DNA of 64,000 nt from assembly GCA_020891255.1 (NCBI GenBank), contig BQFW01000005.1, positions 434,001 through 498,000 of the forward strand, given 5' to 3'. Shown here in pieces: positions 14,141 to 64,000 of this stretch (positions within the stretch are counted from its first letter, which is position 1; each line of letters opens with the position of its first letter). The position numbers and the translations under genes were made by a program. The notes beneath the pieces were generated by a model. That model saw only the letters and a program-made list of their open reading frames with translations, did not search any database and had not been told where the DNA came from. The stretch is from Entomortierella parvispora E1425. Taxonomy: Eukaryota > Fungi > Mortierellomycota.

Positions 14141-14843
14141 TTAATGGTCACCGTGGTGAGCATGGCCCTCCTTGCTGAGTCTCCACTCTATCAGTTTGTA
14201 AAAGAGAGAGATGAAAAAAAAATGTCAATAATCGTGTCATCCAGTCAAAAACAAAAAAGAGGGAGATAGCGAGTCGAGTCCAATAGTCGGATCGCTCCTG
14301 AGAAAATATATCCTGATTGATAGCATGGGTTGTCCAAAAGAATCCTTCCTTGTTCCTGACACTCATGATCCTGTTGGTCCATAAATAGTATCCCGATGGC
14401 CAGCAGTTCCCAAAGAGATTATTGTCATGAACGTACGGTGGTTCTCCTTGCCCCAAGAGAACAAGGCGTATCCCAAACCAAGAGGGACTCCGATGTAGAA
14501 AGCCTGTCCGGTAACACGACGGAAGGTGTTGAAGACAGCCTGGTGAGCGGCACCAGCAAAGGCACGCTGCTCATAGGGAGAGAGAACGTAGACGGCAATT
14601 CCGCGCTGCTTGGGGGCGCCCAAATGTCCCCACCAACCCATCCATTTTCCTAAAAAGAGGTTCGGAAAGAAAAGGAAAGCATTAATTTAAACACGCCTTC
14701 AGAGAGTCTCCAGATTTCGACATGAAGTGGATGGCGCGCGATGGGAGAGATCGAGCGAGCAATCTGCTTCATGGATGACAAGGGTGCCGCGACGGACAGA
14801 GCGACGGAGAGTCGGACAGTCAGGGAGACGTACCGCCAGCCAT
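14141..14843 (-). CDS. QCR8: Cytochrome bc1 complex subunit 8 (3 exons)
   Basis: Exon 1 is 10 nt (ATGGCTGGCG, 14834-14843); exon 2 GKWMGWWGHLGAPKQRGIAVYVLSPYEQRAFAG...FNTFRR; exon 3 QWRLSKEGHAHHGDH*. Contains the QCR8 hallmark MGWWG..G.P.Q.GI..Y.LSP.EQ. Confidence 0.92.
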
Positions 14844-15326
14844 TGTTGATTATAAGAGTAGAGAGAGAGAAAGAAGGGGAAGTGATGAAGGAGATGAAAT
14901 CAGCTTCGGGAATTGCTTTGATACACAGCGAGTTGTGGCGTTGGCGAGTCCAGCTTTCCGAAGAGACGGAGCGACGTGCGAGCGCCGTGGAGGGCCGATT
15001 TGTTTATGTTTCTGTTCCTGCACACGGAATGAACCCTCTGTAGCTGCACACGGGGATAGTGCGGATACAACGAGGCTAATTTGAGCACACGTATGCGTAC
15101 GTGGCTCAGTCCCTGGTCGCCCCGCTTGCGCTGCCCTCTGCACGTTCGTGTTTGTTTCTGTTGGCTGGGAGGGAGGGGAAGAAGAAGAGCAGAGCGAGAA
15201 AAGGGTCAACTCTCCCAGGCTGACTGGCTGACAGGACGGGGCGGCAGCAAAGGACGCAAAAACGGAATTTCACTTCTTCCATCCATCCAACCATCCCTCT
15301 CCCCACTCTCCCACACTCCCCCCATC

Positions 15327-17896
15327 ATGTTCCGCTCCATCCGCTCTGCCTCGGCTCTTGCCAAGGCCATGGTAATTACTCGCCCAGTCTCATCGACATC
15401 TTGCTTTTCTTTTCTGATGATTCGCACGATCCTTTCTCGTCGGGTTCCCCCTCCCCTGGTGCCTGAAATAATAACGGGATGGCCAGATTGTTTGGGGCAA
15501 CAATCCCAACACGGCACCCCACCTTGCTTCTCTTTCCCCCTGGGACCAGTCAAAAGTAGCTCTTCTATCCTCCTTGACTCTGGTCCCTGGGTCGAGAAGC
15601 ACCCCCCCTACAGACTCGCGGCAGTGGGACGGTCTCCATCAGGATCAGATCAGTGACGCCTTCCGTGTCGACCGTGGACTGGATTCAGCTGATTGTATCC
15701 CCGACACGGTCGATTCACTGGGGTGGACACAGGGCAGCGAGAATCAGACCAGGATGAAAACACACAATCGGCAGAACCGCATCTCAGCGCGGGCATGGGA
15801 ATCCAGAATAGCTTGACAACGACACTACTTTTGTTGCTCTCGTCATTCGGATCGGCTCTGTTTGTTCAGATCCCCGCGAATGCCTTTATATGTTCATCGA
15901 CTGCCCCACCAGGGCCAACCTTGTTGGGTTTGGGTGAACTGTGGGCCGGCGAGGCACCTTTGGCCGAATTTTTTTTTATCTTTATTTTGCACATCATCTC
16001 TTCCCGTTGTGTTTTCGTCGTTGGCATCCACTAATCACAATCATCCTTCCATGATCATCATCTCTTAGCCCCGCATGAACCCTGCTGTCCAGCAGAAGCG
16101 CTTCTTGTCCATCCACGAGTACCTTTCCATGGAGCTTCTCCAGAAGCAGGGAATCAAGACTCCCCGTGGTGGTGTCGCCAAGTCCGGCTCCGAGGCCTAT
16201 GCCATCGCCGAGAAGCTCGGTAGGTCCTTGATAACACGATTTAAGAGATCGTTTTTGCTCGTGAAATGGGCCGATAACACACTTTGCGCATGCTTTGTGT
16301 CGCGAGACACAGTGGAAATCGACCTATGGGATATGCACGTGTTGGCCTGGATCACCCGATGGACCAAGTACAGGAACGCGGCTAGCTCAATTGGTTCTGT
16401 GAAGATGTTATCCATGACAATTTCTTTCAAGGGTTCAATTGGCCAGGCTTGCTTGCCTGTGTCGAGTGTCGATTGTGATTGCCAACCTCTTTACTGGCGC
16501 GGAGCGCGGACAAAGATTTTTGGAGCCTGAACATCCGTCACTGCTCAAGACGTAATGGCTGATCATCCCTGTTATTCATGCTTATAGGAACTGAGGATAT
16601 GGTCATCAAGGCCCAGGTTTTGGCCGGTGGTCGTGGCAAGGGTACTTTCGACTCTGGCTTGAAGGGAGGTGTCCGCACCATTTTCTCGTAAGTTCTAGTG
16701 CTATGGTCCCGGGTCGCTTCGGCTTTAGTCAAGGGTTGTTCTCCAGGTCCTAACCTATTTCCCATGTTTTCGTGTTTAACCCATAGCCCCCGTGAGGCTC
16801 AGATGTTCGCCGAGCAGATGATCGGACACAAGTTGGTGACCAAGCAGACCGGTGCTGGTGGAAAGATCTGCAACTCTGTCTACATTTGCGAGCGTCAGTA
16901 CGTCCGTCGCGAGTACTACTTTGCCGTCCTCATGGACCGCAAGTCCCAGGGCCCCGTCATGGTCGCCTCTTCCCAGGGAGGAGTTGACATTGAGTCTGTC
17001 GCCGCTGAGAACCCCGAGGCCATTCTCCAGTTGCCCATTGACATCAACAAGGGTGTCGATCGCGTTGCTGTCCGCGACCTCGCCGAGCGCATGGGATTCA
17101 CCCCCAAGTGCGTTGACCAGGCCACCGATACCATGATCAACCTCTACGATCTCTTCATGCAGAAGGATGCCACCATGGTTGAGATTAACCCCATGGCCGA
17201 GTCCTCTGACCACGAGGGTAAGTTTCAATCTAGCAAACAGGCTTTTAATGCACCCCCAATGGAAGGTCAAACTTGTTTCTCACATTTTCTTTCTATCTGT
17301 TTCTAGTCATCTGCATGGATGCCAAGATCAACTTCGATGATAACGCCGAGTTCCGTCAGCACGAGGTCCACGCTCTCCGCGATGTTACCCAGGAGGATCA
17401 GCGTGAGGTCGCTGCTGCCAAGTACAACTTGAACTACATTGGATTGGATGGATCCATCGGATGCCTCGTTAACGGTGCCGGTTTGGCCATGTCCACCATG
17501 GATATCATCAAGTTGCACGGTGGTGAGCCCGCCAACTTCTTGGATGTTGGTGGTGGAGCCACTGCTGAGCAGGTCACTGAGGCCTTCAAGATTATCTCGT
17601 CCGATCCCCGTGTGACCACCATCTTCACCAACATTTTCGGAGGAATCATGTCTTGCCGTGTCATTGCCCAGGGTATCATTGCTGCTGCCTCTACTCTCCA
17701 GCTCCAGATCCCTCTCGTCGTCCGTCTTCAGGGAACTGAGGTCGATGAGGCCAAGAAGTTGATTGCTGAGTCTGGACTCCGCATCATCTGCTCGGATGAT
17801 TTGGATGATGCTGCCTCCAAGTCCGTCAAGCTCAGCAAGATGGTCAACATGGCTCGTGAGGCCAAGATCAACGTCAGCTTCGAGTTGCCCATTTAA
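15327..17896 (+). CDS. LSC2: Succinyl-CoA ligase beta subunit, mitochondrial (probably ADP-forming)
   Basis: Presequence [15 protein letters not shown]; [97 protein letters not shown]; multiple GT-AG introns. Confidence 0.95.
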
Positions 17897-20650
17897 ATCA
17901 TCTCTCTCGACCTTCAGAAATCAACAATTTTAGAGTGAAGGAGAGCGGGTTTTTTTTAAAAAAAAGGCGAAAAGAAGAAGAGGAAAGGAGAGAATCATTT
18001 TTTTACATACACCGCACATGGCGAAAACCAAGAGTGTTTTTGCTGTCCAAACAACCATAAAAAAAGTCAATACATATTCTACATAAACGAATCGTTCATT
18101 ATCTATTCATCGCGTTTTGTTCTACTCTTGTGTCGACAAGAGGCGCTGTTGCTGTGTTGGCCACCGATGATGGACGACCTGCTCGACTGCGCCCTTACCC
18201 CATCATTTGCGAACCTGTTTGTTACCTTATAGAGAGAGGGGACGGGCAGGGACAGAGTGCAGGATGCGGGCGATCATCGAAGAGCTCTTCTGCTGCATGC
18301 AGGATTCCTAAACGGGACGCGCTCGCCCATAAAAAAAGAGGGGGGGACGCAATGCTCTCTGGTGAAGAGCTCGCAGGTTCCCCGCACTCCAAGCGAAGGG
18401 AAGTAAACAAACGCGGCCAAGTTTGTGTGTGTTTGTTTGTTTGCTTTGGTGAATAAACAAACCGGCATTCGTCACACAACAGCCATTGAAGAGAGAGTGG
18501 ATCAATTGTCCTCGCCCTTTTGCTTCGTTGTCGAAGAGAGGCCACCACTCGCAATACTAATGGTTCTTCCGTTATGTGCTTTTCCAATGACTGTCGTGGA
18601 CCATTCTCTAGACCTGGGCGCGTTTCTGAACTTTTTTTTTTTTTTTTTTTTTTTGAAATAGTCGAGGCCAGACAGACTGATAGAGAATAACAATGCATTG
18701 ACCAGCACTCCTGGACCCAAATTAATAAAAAGATGTTGGTAGTGTAGTTCATTGTCATTATCGTTTCCTCCCGTGTCTCTCCTCTTTCCCTTGCCATTCC
18801 CCGCTTATCGGCTTTTGCCCTCGATCAAGATTGCACTCACGGACCAAAGGAGCAAAATCAACAATTCCAGCTGGATCCCGCGTAGCAGCATCAATTCCTA
18901 CAGGAGACGACTGAGCGGGCGAACTGAGGTGAGCTCTTCTGGTTCCACTGATAATCTCCTGTGCAATTATGGTCTTAAGTATCCAGCTGGTTTATCCATC
19001 TGACCAGTTTCTCCATGTTTTGTGTTTTGTATTGTTGAGGCTGTAAAATCGATGGTATTGTTGTCAAATTGCCCTCGAACCAACCCATCGGGAACGCACG
19101 TAGCTTACGGGTACCACAACCCCGAAGAAAGACGCCTCATAGAAAGGGTAGATCCGGCATGTGCGGGTGCACGCGAGTTTCTGAGCTACTTGGTATAGCT
19201 AGACCAGAGAGGAGCATGTAAATGAGCAGCGTCCCCTTGTCAGACGATAATTCTAAGTAATTCTTCTCGTTTTACTCATGAATTGAATAACACTATGCAC
19301 ATGTCAAGGCCTTAGTCTTGAATAAGGGTATCCGTTCTGGAGAAAGAGGGGTGGTAACGATGGCGTCAACGGCGTTTAGGGTGATTGTTACCCCATCTGC
19401 CCCAGGTTTATACAAATATAGCAAGATCGAGCAAGAAGTGCAATGATTCGTGCCCCGTACAGGTTTGTTACCTCGCCCAGAGTGTTACAAAAAACAAAAT
19501 GCCGAAACCTACCAAGGAAGCAAGAGCGGGGAACCTTTACATCCGTGGTGGGGGAGAGAAACACACGATCATGGAGGTGAATGAACTTTTGATTCGCTCC
19601 AGGGTTTAGTTCTTGACCCCCCCCCCTTTGGAAGTTCATTGTGGTCGACAAAAAAAAATGAAAAAATGGCCTGGAGAATTCCTGTTGCTTAATCAGGGTC
19701 CCCGCGTTTTACAATCCCTTCTTCACCCTCATCAACCTTGCTCTAAAGGCGCTCTCCAGTCTTCGATTGTTTTGTCCGCTTGATCATGGACGTACAATTG
19801 ACAGGCTGCAGAGCCTTGAGATAAAAAAAATAGCGAAAACTCGAAGATAATTGAAAAATGGGGGGTGCGGTCCGAAAGGCAAAAAACAACAGCCAGCCGT
19901 TAACAACTGCCCGTCATTAAGAAGTTGCATCATTAATGATCAATGGGATTCGGGGAGATGTGTGGGGATGGTCTAGGAGAGCACGGATACAGACTCTCGA
20001 GCGGGTTAGTGGAGAAAGTCAAGTAATGAACCGCGAGAGCTAGAACCACCCCCACCAAGCAGCGGTCCAATTATCATTGGCCCCTCTACTTTGATCCAGC
20101 ACATGGACTGAAAAAGGACCACCGAGCTGAGCTGCAACAGAGCAGGAGAGATCTGTATAATGTTGCCGAGTCTTTGATGGCCTTTTTTTTTTTTTTTTGC
20201 GCTCAGCCGTTTCTTGTCATGTGCAGTGAAAAGGTGGGCAGCGAATGGCTCAGGAGCAGTCGGAGGAAAAATTGCCATCAAAAAACCCGAGAGGTTCTAA
20301 CTTGTAACGCCATTGGGCGAAAGGTGGTAATCTGTCTCTTTCATATCGCTTGTAGCCGTTGGTCGCCAGCAGGGGTATAGCCATTTTTCTATCTAGTCCG
20401 GAGTTTTATTGAGTGCTGCCAGAATAAGGGTACGACCTTACACTCCCTGTTGCTTTTCTAGGATCCTTCAGCTCAAGCACGGGGAATCTGACAATGTGTG
20501 TTTGTGCGTCGGTACACAGCGAGCCCCTCAAGAAAAAATCCAACTTTGATGAAAAAAGTGGATCTTCCCCGCTTTTTTTTATTCCGATCACTTTTCCCTC
20601 TACGTACTAGCTTGCACTTCTCATAGTAGACGAGTTATTTTCATCGTTCA

Positions 20651-57924: not shown

Positions 57925-58763
57925 AGGCAAACACAAAGAGAGTCTTTCGCTACCCTTGTGTGGTATCACAGGATCACTGCCTATGACTGTTACCAATAAC
58001 TTTTGCAATAAACAGCTACCCGCATTACTTTCTTCTATGACAGATGACCATGCTGGTTTTGAGAATGCTCTTGGAGAGAAAAGAAAAAAATTATGAGTGC
58101 GAAGCTCTGAACCCAGCCCCTCTTTGCTCACTCCTTCACTTCAGAGGGGCTGGGCGCAAATCTCACCCTTTCCTATGGATGACCCAAAATAATTTTTTCG
58201 TCCAAAAAAGGAAAAAAAATTCTCTGATAAATAGTGTAATTTAAAAACTTTAAATAAATTCACTCTAATAATAATAAAATAGTGAGAGTAATGCCAGCCA
58301 TGCAGCCATGCCATCGCTCGTCGCCCGGCTTGAATGGGGTTAATTTCTTCCATTTTTTCATTTTCAATGCCACCACTTTCTTTCATAAACCCCGCGTTCC
58401 GATCTTGCATTCAGCTCCTGCCACCTCTTCTTTATACCCTTCATCTGATTAAATGACAAAGATGGCAAGCAAAAGACCAATCGAGCAGAGGTGAGGAGAC
58501 GCGTCTCGGGTGTCCATGATGCTCAGAGTCGCCCACGCGTCCATCTGCTCTATTTTTCTTCATCTCTTCATATTTTCTGTTGTAGTCATGATGCTCTTAG
58601 CAAATCTGATCAAGATATCCCGGGAACGCCGAGAAGATCGCGTAGCACCAAGGTGAGTAGCTTGATGTGGTGCCTGGTGGCCTCTTCCTGGTGTGGCCTC
58701 TTCTAACTCTGTGATTTACAATAGGGTGAGGGACGATTTCGTCTTGATTCCCCAGGTGCTCCT

Positions 58764-58844
58764 CCGCGAACCCCGCAAACAACACAAACCCCACGAGCAC
58801 CACGAGCACCACGAACTCCACGAACCCCGCGCACCTCACAAACC
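58764..58844. repeat. Degenerate 9-bp tandem repeat (~9 units, consensus CCACGA(A/G)C(A/C))
   Basis: ccgcgaacc ccgcaaaca acacaaacc ccacgagca ccacgagca ccacgaact ccacgaacc ccgcgcacc tcacaaacc. Confidence 0.8.
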
Positions 58845-59006
58845 TTACAAACGCCAAGATTCATACAGTCACCAATTGTGGCCAACCAAGTATGAAAAAA
58901 ATCGTTAAAAAATATGTGCTGCTCGCGTTTTCTTTTCTAACAGATGTATCCACCTCCTCCCATTCATATCGATTAGGGAACTACCAATGGTTCTGGTGCT
59001 ACCGAT

Positions 59007-62000
59007 ATGGCCCAACCTTTACCCTTTGTCATGGAGGCACAGGCTCTTTCTCCGACTTCTCAGGCTGCGTACATTGGAGGATCAACGCAATTCAACATTG
59101 GAAAAAATTCGACGCCACCCAACATTGGAAAAGAGTCGCCGCGACCCAGCATTGGAGATGAATCACCGCGACCCAAGCATGCGTCAGAGGAGTCTCTGCT
59201 CGATCCTTTCTGTGACAACACTGATGGAGAGCCATTCGATAGCCCATTCTGGCTTCGGAGATTAGGAAGTAATCGAACAGAGACGCCGATGATATGGGTT
59301 TCTGGGAACGATTACATGAGGACCCCCACAAGAAAAAACTCGCGACGATCTAGGAATCTGAGCACCCCTCAGTTCGCGTAAGCATGAGATACCCCAACCT
59401 GCCTACCCTGTCGCAACTTTAGTTGCCCCCAGGTTTACGCAAATTTCTAACATGCAGTGAAATTCAGTGATAGGATTAGGACTTTAACGGCCGACATGGA
59501 GGAGCAGTTCAACTCATCGACACTGCAGGTAAATTCAGCACATGGTTTCGAAAACATCCTTATCGTAATTTATGAATTACCTCTCAAGTGAATTACGAAT
59601 TACGTATAGATGTGCATGCCCGATTCCCCCCACACTCAGAGCGACCAATGGAGAGGATCGAATGCCCGGATCAACAAGGAAGCCGCATGTATGTGAAGAC
59701 CGGTTGTCCAAAGAAACCAGCAATATGTCACTCCCACAGGCGTCTAACAATTATTTTTCTTTTTAGCATTCCTCTACCCACAAAGTTGCAATGATTCTTA
59801 ACTACATCAGGGAACAACAGCTTTCACTTCCCGCCTTCTTCGAGAAGCTGTTTAACTCTCAAGATGAAAACATCAAGCGCTGGACTCATCAATTCTATCA
59901 CAAAGACGGTCCTCGTCGCGTTATCAAAATTTGGAGCCAAAAGTTACGCAAGATCAAAGAATGGGATGCCCCATTTGTGAACAGCGCTGTAGACGTCGTT
60001 GTCTCAAGGACTAAACGGGAGCTTGATCGCCTCAAGAACGGCGTCGTAGGTGACGATGGCCCACACCCAGCCTACCGATTCCCGCACAATAGAATGTCGG
60101 AGGAAAATATCGATAAGATCCTCAGGAACGGGTTTCTCGACTCTTACGCCGGCGAAGCTTCTTTTTTGACACGACTTTTGGACGGCATGCTTAGCAAGGG
60201 AAATGGTACGAACAGTGGCGATGGTAGCACCAGAGTAAACGAAGGCAACAACAACGGCAACGACAGTGAGAACGACACCGAGAGCAACAGCGACAACAGC
60301 GACAATAGCGGCGACAACGACATCGACAGCAACGGCGATAACACCGTCAACAACGGCAGTGACAACATCGGCAACAATGATGAAGAAACTGTGGGAAGCG
60401 CTACACCTGCTCGCAGGCGCGGTCGAAAACCCAGCTCTGTTCGTGGCTGCATCTCTGCTATGCTCATGTTCTTGAGATCCCAGCAATGCAATGCTTTTCA
60501 GATGGTAATGGGCATCTATCTTCACTGCCTGGGAGCTCCCAGACGAGTTTTAGAGACTTTGTCGGCTCTTGGACTTTGCGTGTCATATGATCAGATTCAC
60601 AGGGCATTGAAGGCCTTGACCAAAGACGCACAGGAGAGGGTGAAGGTGGCAGTCCTCAACAACGACTTTTACATTGTATACGACAACATCAACATTGCCA
60701 CAAGGCACCATCACCAGAGAGTAGGAAAAAGAGACACGTTCGACAACGGCACAGCTGCTACCGTGATTCTGATTCCCGACAGCTCAAATCTCGGGAGCTC
60801 CAGGAGTGCTGAAATACCTCGATCATCCCCAATGGTTTGCTTCAGAGTGGACAGGCCAGAGCCAAGCGCCAGCATTTTTTTCCCCACAAGCACCGACCGC
60901 ACCATGACTAGGGCTGCCTGCCGCACACATCTGTCGACTGCCATTTCGCAGTTTTTGCCTCGATCACCCAGTGTTTGCGTGATTCCCATGCCGGCCATTG
61001 ACGTACTGAAGGTTGTTAAGACGAAAACTTTTCCATTGCCAACCATGAAGATCGATGAGTCGACTATTGCCGGAAATCTCGCAGTGCTGGAAAACATAAC
61101 AAAGATAGATCTCGGCTTAAGCGATGAATGGTTCAGCAAGACCACCAGGGACATCATAGTGGCCGGTGATCAGATGACTGTCTCTAGACTTTTATCTCTC
61201 AAGGTACACCGCATGGTTGAGTCGGATCCATTCGGCAGTCTTGGTTGGGTACATCCTACGTTTCAGCTCTTCCATCTCCAAATGACACTTTGCTCCACGA
61301 TCTACAAGACACATCTTGGCGCCGATGCCAATACCCCAGGCTCACTTGCATCATTCATTTCCCTATTGGCCAGTAAAGGCTTTAACACGGATAAACCGGA
61401 GTACAAGCCAACCAGTGAACTGCTGAAGATTGTTTTCGACGCAATGTCAATGGTACTCTGGGAAGATCTTCATACCTCAGTGGAGTCTGACATGACAAGA
61501 TTCGTTGATCTTGTCATTTACGCCATAGCTAGTCTGCAGCATGCCAATCCCTTGCTCAATGGCCGGCCCTGCACTCCAGCAGATATCAATGCTCTTCTCT
61601 TCCTCCGAGACATGATCGTTTTCATCGAACTCTCTGCTGCTATTAAGGCTGGCGATCTTGGGCGGATAAGATGTGTGCTACCAACCGTGGCATTGATGAT
61701 GCACGGCGGAGGCAATTCCAAATATGCCCTTGAGCTACTACGATTTTCTCCACGGCATGCGCCACCTGTGGACGCGTGAATGGGAACACAGGGTCCTTTC
61801 AAGCATGCTGGTGAACCCTAAAGGCATTCCTCAAGCATGGATGCCAACGGACATGTACCAAGAAATCATCAACTTCCTCCTCAAAGCCACTCATGCAGCG
61901 AAAGGGCCAAACGCAAGCTGGGACTATCTTCGCGAACAAATCTCAACAAACGTCGAGATATTTCAAACCATTGCACGTAATTTCGAACGGGAGATAGAAA

Positions 62001-62263
62001 CCAAGTACAACAGCACTGCTCACAAAAAACCATCCACGAAAGAGGATGTTGAGCTTGTCAGAGACAATCTCCAGTTCTGTGGAATCCTTTGGGCATCCAA
62101 GCAAGACACTCGGCCTTCTCCATCCGTGGTAGTTGACCTTCAAACTGTTGGCGCGCACAAAATGGCAGAGAGTGCTATAGCATGTTTTCTCAGAAAAAGC
62201 GATAGCTACGATACTGTGGATATGGAGGAAGTCGAGGCCAACGACCATGTTGTAGCTGAATGA
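59007..62263 (+). CDS. DUF6589-type protein, putative RNase H-fold transposase-like; exons 59007-59377, 59468-59528, 59767-62263; one +1 frameshift at 61744-61747
   Basis: Motifs VYDNINI...HHQRVGKRDTFDNGTAAT, LPTMKIDESTIAGNL, VAGDQMT, LFHLQM, ELSAAIKAGDLGR, HGGGNSKYALELL, LVNPKG...WMPTDMYQEIIN. Removing one T from cgattttctc fuses ORFs 59791..61779 and 61724..62263. The upstream exons are phase-consistent but tentative. Family assignment is from recalled motifs. Confidence 0.7.
59093..59173 (+). repeat. 27-bp coding minisatellite (3 units; NIGKNSTPP/NIGKESPRP/SIGDESPRP)
   Basis: caacattggaaaaaattcgacgccacc caacattggaaaagagtcgccgcgacc cagcattggagatgaatcaccgcgacc. Confidence 0.85.
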
Positions 62264-62429
62264 TATTTTATGACAATAATAATACTAACTAAAGAAGAAT
62301 GAATGAATGGGACCTGGGCTCGTGCGATGTTAAATGGCCCGGCCGGCTGTAAATGTTTGGTTGTGCAGGGTCATCAGATGCAAGCAGTGACTCCATCTCC
62401 TTGTCATCTTGGCTCGGTCAATTGATGGG

Positions 62430-63917
62430 CTATTCTTCGACTACCAAGGAATTTTGATCATTTTTCGTACTTTCTATCTCGCCCAGGGCTTTCGCCACAA
62501 CCTCAGCGATCATTTCAAAATGATCGCAATCCACTGGCACAAAATCACAGCTGTCAGCTATCAACCTCACCATTTCAGTAGTGGTGGCCGCAAAGAGCTT
62601 GTAGCACAACCTTGCGAGTACTTTATCGGGCAAAACGCAAAGCTCGAAGTCCACGAAGGACACTTCTTCTCCTGTCCATTTTTTGCACTCGTTCTTCCTC
62701 CACTCCAATAACCTGTTCCTCCCTACATCCTGATCTTTGTCCGCGCTCTTCCCCTTTGGTATAGTCAGTTCGGGCCCAATTTGACCAGTAAGTTCGGTCG
62801 TCTTGCGGCGACAAGACTCACCGAGACATACATCACAACATTTGGTACGAGAGGATATTTTGTTCCCTAGATATTCATCCACCACATGCCACCGACATTT
62901 CCTCCGACTGTTGTCCTTGTCCTTTTCCTTGTCCTTTTCCTTGTCCTTGTCCTTGTCAATTGGGGGGGCAACGAAATTTAAGATGTCAGGTCTCTTGTTG
63001 TATTTCCTGCTGGTAGTTGGAGGCGCCAAGAGGATCCCAAAGCCTTTAGTTCCAGGACCCCTCGCTGCTCGACCGAACCTCTGCACAAGACTCGTCAAAT
63101 CGTGAGGCAGACTTCATATCATTGAAAATATCTTGAAGTAAGTAAGATCGTCTCTCATTTCATCCGCATTGTCCAACCTTAGTTACGTTTCAACTTACTC
63201 ATATTGGAACACAGTGATAACATCTGAGATATCGCATCCCATGCCGCAGGCATCAGTAGCCAACAGGACATCAATCTCGCTATTAATGAACTTGAGCAGG
63301 ACTTTATCCTTGGAAGAACTAAGGCGGGTTGAGAAAAATGCGTCCATTCGCAGATCAGGCCTCAATGGCCTTAACTTGTCCTGTACATCTCTGAGAAGTG
63401 CGATGCTGTCAAAATAGACAATCGTCTTTGTATTGTCCAGCAACTTCGCCAGTTGTCTGACTCGATTCCTTAGTGAAAAGGTATGAACTTCGAGCTGGAT
63501 GTTATCACGAATGTCATCCACACGAATGACATGAACGGTGGACGAGGCGAGAAAGACGCTATTCTTGATTTCCTGGAGCGAATCGGGTGGGAGGGTTGCA
63601 GTCAGGCCTACGATCGGCACCCCAGGTACCTTACCACGCAATGATCCAATTTGCGAATAATACGGCCGAAAATCTTTCCATTTATCTACACAGTGGACTT
63701 CATCTACGACGATGGAGCATAGTTGACTTTTCCAATACTTATTGTTCCAAAGGTCCTGAACCTTGCATGCAGTAGATCCTTTCCCGAAAATGACTTCTGG
63801 CGACATGAACACAGCTCTGTAATGTCCCTCCTTAACTAATTTAATGTCACTGTCGTTAACTCGATTGCCGTTGTAGGTCGAGAGTAGCAAACAAGTGACA
63901 TCCTTTTCTTTGAGTTT
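62430..63917 (-). CDS. RecQ-like superfamily-2 DNA helicase (5' part beyond the window), with RQC Zn-binding and HRDC-like regions
   Basis: VFMSPE, IVVDEVHC.DKWKDFRPYY (motif II plus aromatic loop), GLTATL (III), IVYF (IV), LATDACGMGCDISDV (V); intron 63112-63198; YDLPHDLTSLVQRFGRAARG (VI); CRW...CCDVC; LLEWRK...VLPDKVLARL. Confidence 0.88.
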
Positions 63918-64000
63918 CTAGAGTATTAACACAGGGTCGCATTGCGCGATATGTTAGAAAAAAGTATACCTGTTAGACTGGTATATTGTATGCTGGCATA

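Follow-up and report, generated by a model that had tools for sequence, protein, structure and literature searches.

A young DDE transposon with a RecQ-like helicase gene in Entomortierella parvispora, very probably of the AcademH lineage

A stretch of 64,000 nt from Entomortierella parvispora E1425 (assembly GCA_020891255.1, contig BQFW01000005.1, positions 434,001 to 498,000 of the forward strand), here called the window, ends within a 7.6-kb transposon that spans window positions 58101-65699. The window holds the left 5.9 kb of this element, and the right end lies beyond 64000; positions past that point are given as window equivalents, obtained from the window locus (L001) by adding 48452 to its own numbering. 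Within the element a DUF6589 gene on the plus strand and a RecQ-like helicase gene on the minus strand run towards each other, with 166 nt between their stops at 62263 and 62430, exactly as described in the original prediction, which had been made from the letters of the window. That prediction set the start of the region at 59007, which is too far to the right, as the annotated transposase gene begins at 58453. The main features of the element are as follows.

58092-58100, no strand: left copy of the 9-bp target site duplication (TSD), TATGAGTGC; its right copy is at window-equivalent 65700-65708, beyond the window
58101-59163, plus strand: left terminal inverted repeat (TIR), identical to the right TIR for about 1020 bp and decaying to about 59237
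58101-58123, within the left TIR: conserved 23-nt terminus GAAGCTCTGAACCCAGCCCCTCT, kept in Podila verticillata and partly in Mortierella alpina
58143-58155, within the left TIR: subterminal motif AGAGGGGCTGGGC
58453-62263, plus strand: transposase gene (DUF6589), of which the start codon (ATG, 58453) and the first four exons are within the TIR; copy L003 encodes an intact product of 1101 amino acids (aa), P0066
62264-62429, no strand: spacer of 166 nt between the convergent stops
62430-64000, minus strand: 3' two thirds of the helicase gene, made up of the core exon (63195-63890) and the last exon (62430 to about 63110) with an intron between them

The boundaries were set by comparing the window locus with a second copy (L002) on a different contig and among different neighbour genes. 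The two have exactly 7.6 kb in common, at 99.96% identity. This block opens with GAAGCTCTGAACCC at 58101 and closes at window-equivalent 65699, its termini reading 5'-GA...TC-3', and it is bounded by TIRs that align over 1063 nt at 99%, the first ~1020 nt being identical and the remainder a decaying tail. Immediately outside stand direct repeats, TATGAGTGC in L001 and AAGTTCTGT in L002.

The 90% cluster of P0001, an E. parvispora hypothetical protein of 934 aa, contains seven differently annotated proteins of this species, and nine distinct copies of the element on five contigs of the assembly were fetched with them (L001-L007, L030 and L031). Perfect 9-bp TSDs without any sequence consensus flank eight of the nine, and those of the ninth agree in 7 bp. 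Wherever flanking genes were called, the genes around the copies are unrelated between sites. The pair is thus multi-copy with differing flanks, and not the single-copy, syntenic arrangement that would have spoken for a resident host locus. Over the 7.6 kb the nine copies show no real substitution among 21 variable columns: in 18 the copies differ in length by a single base, almost always within a short homopolymer, and the other three adjoin such indels. Variation of this homopolymer-only kind suggests long-read assembly error. As the copies are identical apart from homopolymer calls, the element has moved very recently and the family is very young. In contigs of the source sample, word depth rose from 76.5 on the flank to 838.7 across the interior and to 1626.9 within the TIR; the ratio of interior to flank gives a rough estimate of ~11 copies, with the TIR at twice the interior depth.

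A comparison was available from run X5, a different strain under the same species label. Here a contig of 14.6 kb tracks the left flank at ~93% identity, and its match breaks off precisely at 58100, where the left TSD copy ends, after which the contig continues with sequence unlike the element. The element interior has a depth of 0 in runs X5 and X6, except for a low-complexity stretch at ~60237-60433. From these contigs, the element appears to be absent from this site in the other strain, a presence/absence difference of the kind that had been proposed as a check on mobility. In several further X5 contigs, which differ in their upstream sequence, the match starts right at 58101 and covers the terminal 60-190 nt only (58101-58294); one has 4 nt inserted after 58127. 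They resemble the ends of related families or of short non-autonomous derivatives; accordingly, that strain carries further elements with related ends.

Length differences between the copies fall at 58551-58553, 59626, 61744, 62962 and 63958 of the window, and at four of these places the short-read contig has a reading other than that of the assembly. It seems, then, that long-read indels have been left uncorrected in the repeats of GCA_020891255.1; they split the annotated genes into fragments of 152 to 1101 aa.

The transposase gene is itself affected. Two plus-strand open reading frames (ORFs), 59791-61779 (662 aa) and 61724-62263 (179 aa), match Pfam DUF6589 with E-values of 9e-59 and 9e-26 and cover profile positions 8-319 and 318-410, together the whole profile. 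The DUF6589 ORF is 100% identical to P0001. The split had been taken for splicing; its cause is an extra T in the run at 61741-61744, not an intron. Homologues run uninterrupted across the ORF junction, TTT keeps the frame where the window has TTTT, and the extra T (61744) is missing from the high-depth short-read contig of the source sample, with TTT in five of the nine assembled copies. The frameshift of the window copy probably reflects either an error of assembly or a minority allele. Programmed +1 frameshifting at this run, where UUU-U would permit slippage of tRNA-Phe, was considered and rejected on the evidence of the short-read contig and the five copies lacking the extra T.

In an alignment of 32 sequences (A1), the blocks VYDNIN, AGDQ, W..HP..QLFH, NYALE and QENxN are invariant or nearly so. 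An AlphaFold model of the transposase (predicted local distance difference test, pLDDT, 78.5; predicted template modelling score 0.75) has the order beta1-beta2-beta3-alpha-beta4-alpha-beta5, an RNase H-like arrangement; a long insertion of helices then follows, ahead of the final conserved acidic residue. The best specific matches in Foldseek were the P element and Hermes transposases, and structural Z-scores were 11.1 for Hermes, 9.6 for the P element, 7.4 for Tn5, 7.2 for ISCth4, 6.5 for RAG1 and 6.4 for Transib. DUF6589 thus models as an RNase H-like DDE transposase core that is closest in structure to Hermes and the P element. The structural alignments to Hermes, the P element and RAG1 end where their catalytic E falls near model residue 700, so that D576, D738 and E969 (P0066 numbering) are favoured as the triad, with E926 as an alternative for the E. 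The corresponding positions in the window are given below.

60682-60684, plus strand: candidate catalytic D576 (VYDNIN), on beta-1 of the RNase H-like core, a near-invariant column in A1
61168-61170, plus strand: candidate catalytic D738 (AGDQMT), just past strand beta-4, from A1 and the model
61741-61744, plus strand: T-run, TTTT in the window copy, which splits the frame upstream of the likely catalytic E
61732-61734, plus strand: alternative catalytic E926
61862-61864, plus strand: candidate catalytic E969 (family motif QENxN, QEI here), near-invariant in A1

The transposase also contains a low-complexity insertion rich in Asn, Asp and Ser at 60248-60357, modelled with pLDDT <50 (stretch 145-221 of the model). 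Nowhere else in the interior of the element do unrelated contigs from other runs give weak matches.

The helicase gene is read from the opposite side. Its start codon is at window-equivalent 65347; the window, which stops at 64000, includes neither motif I nor the 5' exons encoded by the TIR. The helicase had been described as compact, which does not hold, as the annotated product has 799 aa and the first 1.35 kb of the gene, motif I included, are past the end of the window. Within the window, the minus-strand ORFs 63195-63890 and 62430-63098 carry DEAD and Helicase_C, the former ORF holding the end of DEAD together with Helicase_C, and the DEVH of motif II, which had been noticed before, is at 63693-63704. 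Three further features belong to the C-terminal part.

62811-62897, minus strand: RecQ-type zinc Cys cluster (CRWHVVDEYLGN...CCDVCLGESC), spaced C-x18-CC-x2-C-x4-C
62442-62741, minus strand: HRDC-like helical tail, modelled with pLDDT 80.6
62956-62962, no strand: G7 run (C7 on the coding strand), which keeps the C-terminus of the helicase in frame in the window copy only; the other eight copies have G6

The best solved relatives of the core exon are WRN, RecQ, BLM, RECQ5 and RECQ1, at 1e-15 to 1e-9, the BLM match being at 1e-12; beyond these only weak matches were obtained, to RECQ4 (8.5e-5) and eIF4A. The Cys cluster fits the RecQ zinc motif kept throughout the clade of this helicase, CRRxVLxxxFGN..CCDxC. 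Pfam RecQ_Zn_bind, RQC and HRDC gave no match to the helicase at E<=1. The cluster that had been called RQC-like does exist and is better read as the RecQ zinc subdomain. The tail that had been called HRDC-like plausibly is so: the ten best PDB matches of the modelled tail are Rrp6, EXOSC10 and WRN HRDC domains, with weak E-values of 0.2-1.5. By its DExH core, its best similarity to RecQ proteins and its zinc motif, the product is a RecQ-like superfamily 2 (SF2) helicase. Only 22 representatives at E<=1e-30 make up its own clade, and one of them is mislabelled 'sgs1'. An orthologue of the host helicases Sgs1/BLM or Hrq1 was considered and rejected, given a multi-copy gene within a TIR-bounded element and matches of 1e-12 to BLM and 8.5e-5 to RECQ4. 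With a similarity of only ~1e-15 to any solved RecQ, the gene is indeed distinct from host Sgs1, as had been expected. As regards the G run, the Podila homologue of the helicase uses the G7 frame, and in the simplest reading of the assembled copies and this frame, G6 in the other eight would be an under-called 7-base homopolymer. Distant relatives of the helicase were found in the dinoflagellate Durusdinium trenchii, where P0160 and its cluster are proteins of ~1440 aa with two DEAD plus Helicase_C units in tandem, several paralogues being located on one 2.4-Mb contig.

Both annotated genes begin inside the TIRs, at a mirrored ATG 352 nt into each repeat, and exons 1-4, which are borne by the TIR, are open and have GT-AG borders. 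Transposase and helicase are as a consequence of this layout identical over their first 138 residues, and ~90 more residues are recognisably homologous beyond the identical part of the TIR. In Podila verticillata, the frame on the helicase side is open from the TIR ATG for ~190 codons, up to an acidic run and an intron. A frame that stays open and partly homologous past the TIR, with the same layout in P. verticillata, argues for function. It is possible, and we put it forward tentatively, that the 1-kb TIRs are working gene heads, each with promoter, ATG and four exons, and that the 138-residue module is a targeting device common to both enzymes. Such a module would bind the element ends or a host partner, for example, bringing both enzymes to the same DNA. 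To our knowledge, TIRs that supply two proteins with the same module have not been described for any eukaryotic transposon. Two short repeats occur where the TIR is coding, one of 9 nt (PRTPRTPR-like tracts) and one of 27 nt (NIGK(N/E)S(T/P)PP-like units), at window positions 58762-58868 and 59093-59180. Both tracts are of low complexity, basic and proline-rich, and are located at the N-terminus common to the two proteins.

The association of the two genes recurs in Podila, Mortierella, Actinomortierella, Mycena and soil metagenomes, in agreement with the recurrent co-occurrence anticipated for a mobile pair. Podila verticillata (L008) has 828-nt TIRs, an identical 23-nt terminus, the 9-bp TSD TCGAAAAGA and a convergent transposase and helicase, and Mortierella alpina (L009) has 637-nt TIRs and an unannotated convergent helicase. 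Of 17 soil metagenome loci, six had enough downstream sequence and a transposase identity of at least 39%, and in all six a convergent helicase is on the opposite strand. Other gene orders occur as well. Three distant metagenome loci and Mycena olivaceomarginata have an upstream, divergent helicase. The order is tandem in Actinomortierella ambigua, where both genes are on one strand and are annotated as one protein of 1248 aa (L029:1553-4692, JAAAIA010000877.1). A single Rhodofomes locus has DUF6589 without a helicase. Many homologues in Mortierellaceae are on contigs of ~5.4 kb, the interior length between the TIRs, as expected for a collapsed repeat. Matches in AFDB and Atlas include proteins named DUF6589, and clusters in which the most frequent phyla are Basidiomycota, Mucoromycota, Cnidaria and Mollusca. 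A profile search of a word-indexed protein database with A1 returned fungi only and no animal DUF6589-XPG fusions (AcademX).

Two of these loci showed additional features. In M. alpina, genes with Crinkler and homing-endonuclease/Hint domains adjoin the L009 element, and on its other side there is a second, diverged transposase-helicase element in opposite orientation (L009:1-4221 and 14800-17909); this region may be a repeat-rich island. The 8-kb contig of A. ambigua has 55-nt inverted ends and presents a third gene order, which resembles the layout of KolobokH.

In the mechanism that we propose, the transposase would bind the conserved termini and the subterminal motif, cut by means of a D-D-E site in an RNase H-like core, of the same structural type as hAT and P, and integrate with a 9-bp stagger. 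The helicase would be an accessory encoded by the element, which may open or remodel the ends. Alternatively, it might steer the repair of the excision gap, by which the donor copy would be restored and the copy number would rise.

AcademH is reportedly treated as a lineage of the Academ superfamily by Kojima in 2020, in Mob DNA 11:15. AcademH elements have TSDs of 9-10 bp and a helicase, AcademX elements TSDs of 3-4 bp and a nuclease (PMC10045372); AcademH is listed for Basidiomycota, Ascomycota and Mucoromycota (PMC10799480), and Academ has been recorded in Mortierella (PMC5751038). The present element has perfect 9-bp TSDs in eight of nine E. parvispora copies and in Podila verticillata, a DEAD and Helicase_C gene besides the transposase gene inside the TIRs of every copy, and TIRs at its bounds. 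With its 9-bp TSDs, its TIRs of ~1.06 kb, its DDE transposase and its RecQ-like helicase, we regard it as highly probable that this is an autonomous cut-and-paste DNA transposon fitting the described AcademH lineage.

The alternative that survives best is a DDE transposon with a helicase from a superfamily distinct from Academ, its resemblance to AcademH being convergent. Pfam still labels DUF6589 'unknown function', one publication naming DUF6589 treats the domain as unexplained, and the fold of the transposase is nearest to hAT and P rather than to anything labelled Academ. Against this, TSDs of 9 bp and a RecQ-like helicase encoded by a gene of its own are the two traits by which AcademH has been characterised in print (PMC10045372), and the distribution of DUF6589 in fungi, Cnidaria and Mollusca agrees with the range 'animals and fungi' reported for AcademH. 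Moreover, among the superfamilies detected in Mortierellomycotina by Muszewska et al., Academ and Kolobok alone are without a Pfam model (PMC5751038), and Kolobok is excluded here. We therefore consider a separate superfamily unlikely.

The gene order of the A. ambigua relative is that of KolobokH, the Kolobok elements with a RecQ helicase, and termini of 5'-GA...TC-3' would fit the RR...YY rule. Kolobok TSDs, however, are 4 bp long and specific for TTAA; here they have 9 bp, and TTAA occurs in none of the nine. In a comparison by eye, the KolobokH motifs FDCSWSH, DGDLDSNK, DLKH and NEAFNR are unlike the VYDNIN, AGDQMT, QLFH and QENxN of this family, and a KolobokH element is very improbable. 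Helitrons were rejected, in line with the original prediction, as Pfam shows DUF6589, DEAD and Helicase_C only and TIRs and TSDs are present. Kyakuja-Dileera-Zisupton (KDZ) and Plavaka elements were rejected as well: Pfam scans of the transposase at E<=1 give DUF6589 only, and the link to them that had been suggested is not supported by any Pfam match. That a host gene pair has been caught up in a recent segmental duplication, with no transposon involved, is suggested by nothing beyond a first impression of two DNA-metabolism genes behind a run of housekeeping genes, and can practically be dismissed in view of sharp, identical boundaries at nine unrelated sites, TIRs, 9-bp duplications and a strain from which the element is missing.

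Some points weigh against the AcademH reading or the description of the family. Placement in AcademH is based on published hallmarks, not on alignment to Repbase Academ transposases; the supplements of PMC10799480 and PMC5751038 contain no Pfam-to-Academ link and no Academ alignments, and a literature search for Academ together with XPG found none. The assembly shows a frameshift in the transposase of the window copy, which short-read contigs contradict, and a frameshift in the helicase of the eight other copies. Transcription, splicing and the common N-terminus at the protein level are taken from annotation and open frames. The empty site in the other strain is read from the left-flank contig alone, the right flank not being seen joined to it, and a copy number from contig word depth is rough.

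Taken together, the pair is a mobile unit of a DDE-type transposase and its own RecQ-like helicase, as had been proposed, with the shared ends, TIRs and TSDs that had been looked for all found and nine copies in one genome. The element is a very young member of the described AcademH group, real and mobile, and not a new kind of system. Reading it as an 'unknown DNA-processing system' is not needed, and the implied novelty does not stand, since DDE transposons with a RecQ-like helicase and 9-10-bp TSDs have already been described as AcademH, as quoted in PMC10045372 and PMC10799480, Mucoromycota included. DUF6589 gains a working meaning from this analysis, namely the catalytic core of a DDE transposase that is structurally of the hAT/P kind and is accompanied by a RecQ-like helicase. 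In rust fungi, one publication speculates that DUF6589 is a virulence or epigenetic factor; this label and the label 'sgs1' are probably cases of transposon genes mistaken for host genes. Besides this annotation, the value of the finding is in the family itself, which is apparently active and, with ~11 identical copies, intact ends, a strain without the element and three gene orders, is an unusually clean natural system for the role of the AcademH helicase.

Among known systems, AcademH is the most alike: cut-and-paste by a DDE enzyme, TIRs, a helicase gene beside the transposase gene, TSDs of 9-10 bp, low copy number in fungi including Mucoromycota, and relatives in animals. The element may differ from AcademH as described in its TIRs of 1 kb, which encode the start codon and the first four exons of both genes, and in the occurrence of three gene orders (convergent, divergent, tandem). 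The hAT (Hermes) and P elements have the RNase H-like fold, with a large insertion of helices ahead of the catalytic E (Z 11.1 and 9.6), but only ~10% sequence identity to the transposase of this element, no match from the hAT and P Pfam models, and no helicase. The TSDs of hAT and P elements are of 8 bp. MuDR/Mutator of maize is similar in having two convergent genes, inward promoters in long TIRs and 9-bp TSDs, but its mudrB is not a helicase, its TIRs measure ~0.2 kb and its two proteins have no common N-terminus. The Pfam families of Mutator-like element (MULE) transposases do not match the element. KolobokH is likewise a fungal DDE transposon with a RecQ-type helicase (PMC9587614), from which the element differs by 9-bp TSDs without TTAA and by QLFH as the corresponding motif. 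Helitrons, finally, are also eukaryotic transposons with a helicase, but theirs is a Pif1-type SF1 (superfamily 1) helicase fused to an HUH Rep, without TIRs or TSDs, whereas the present element combines a DDE transposase with a separate RecQ-type SF2 helicase, TIRs and TSDs.

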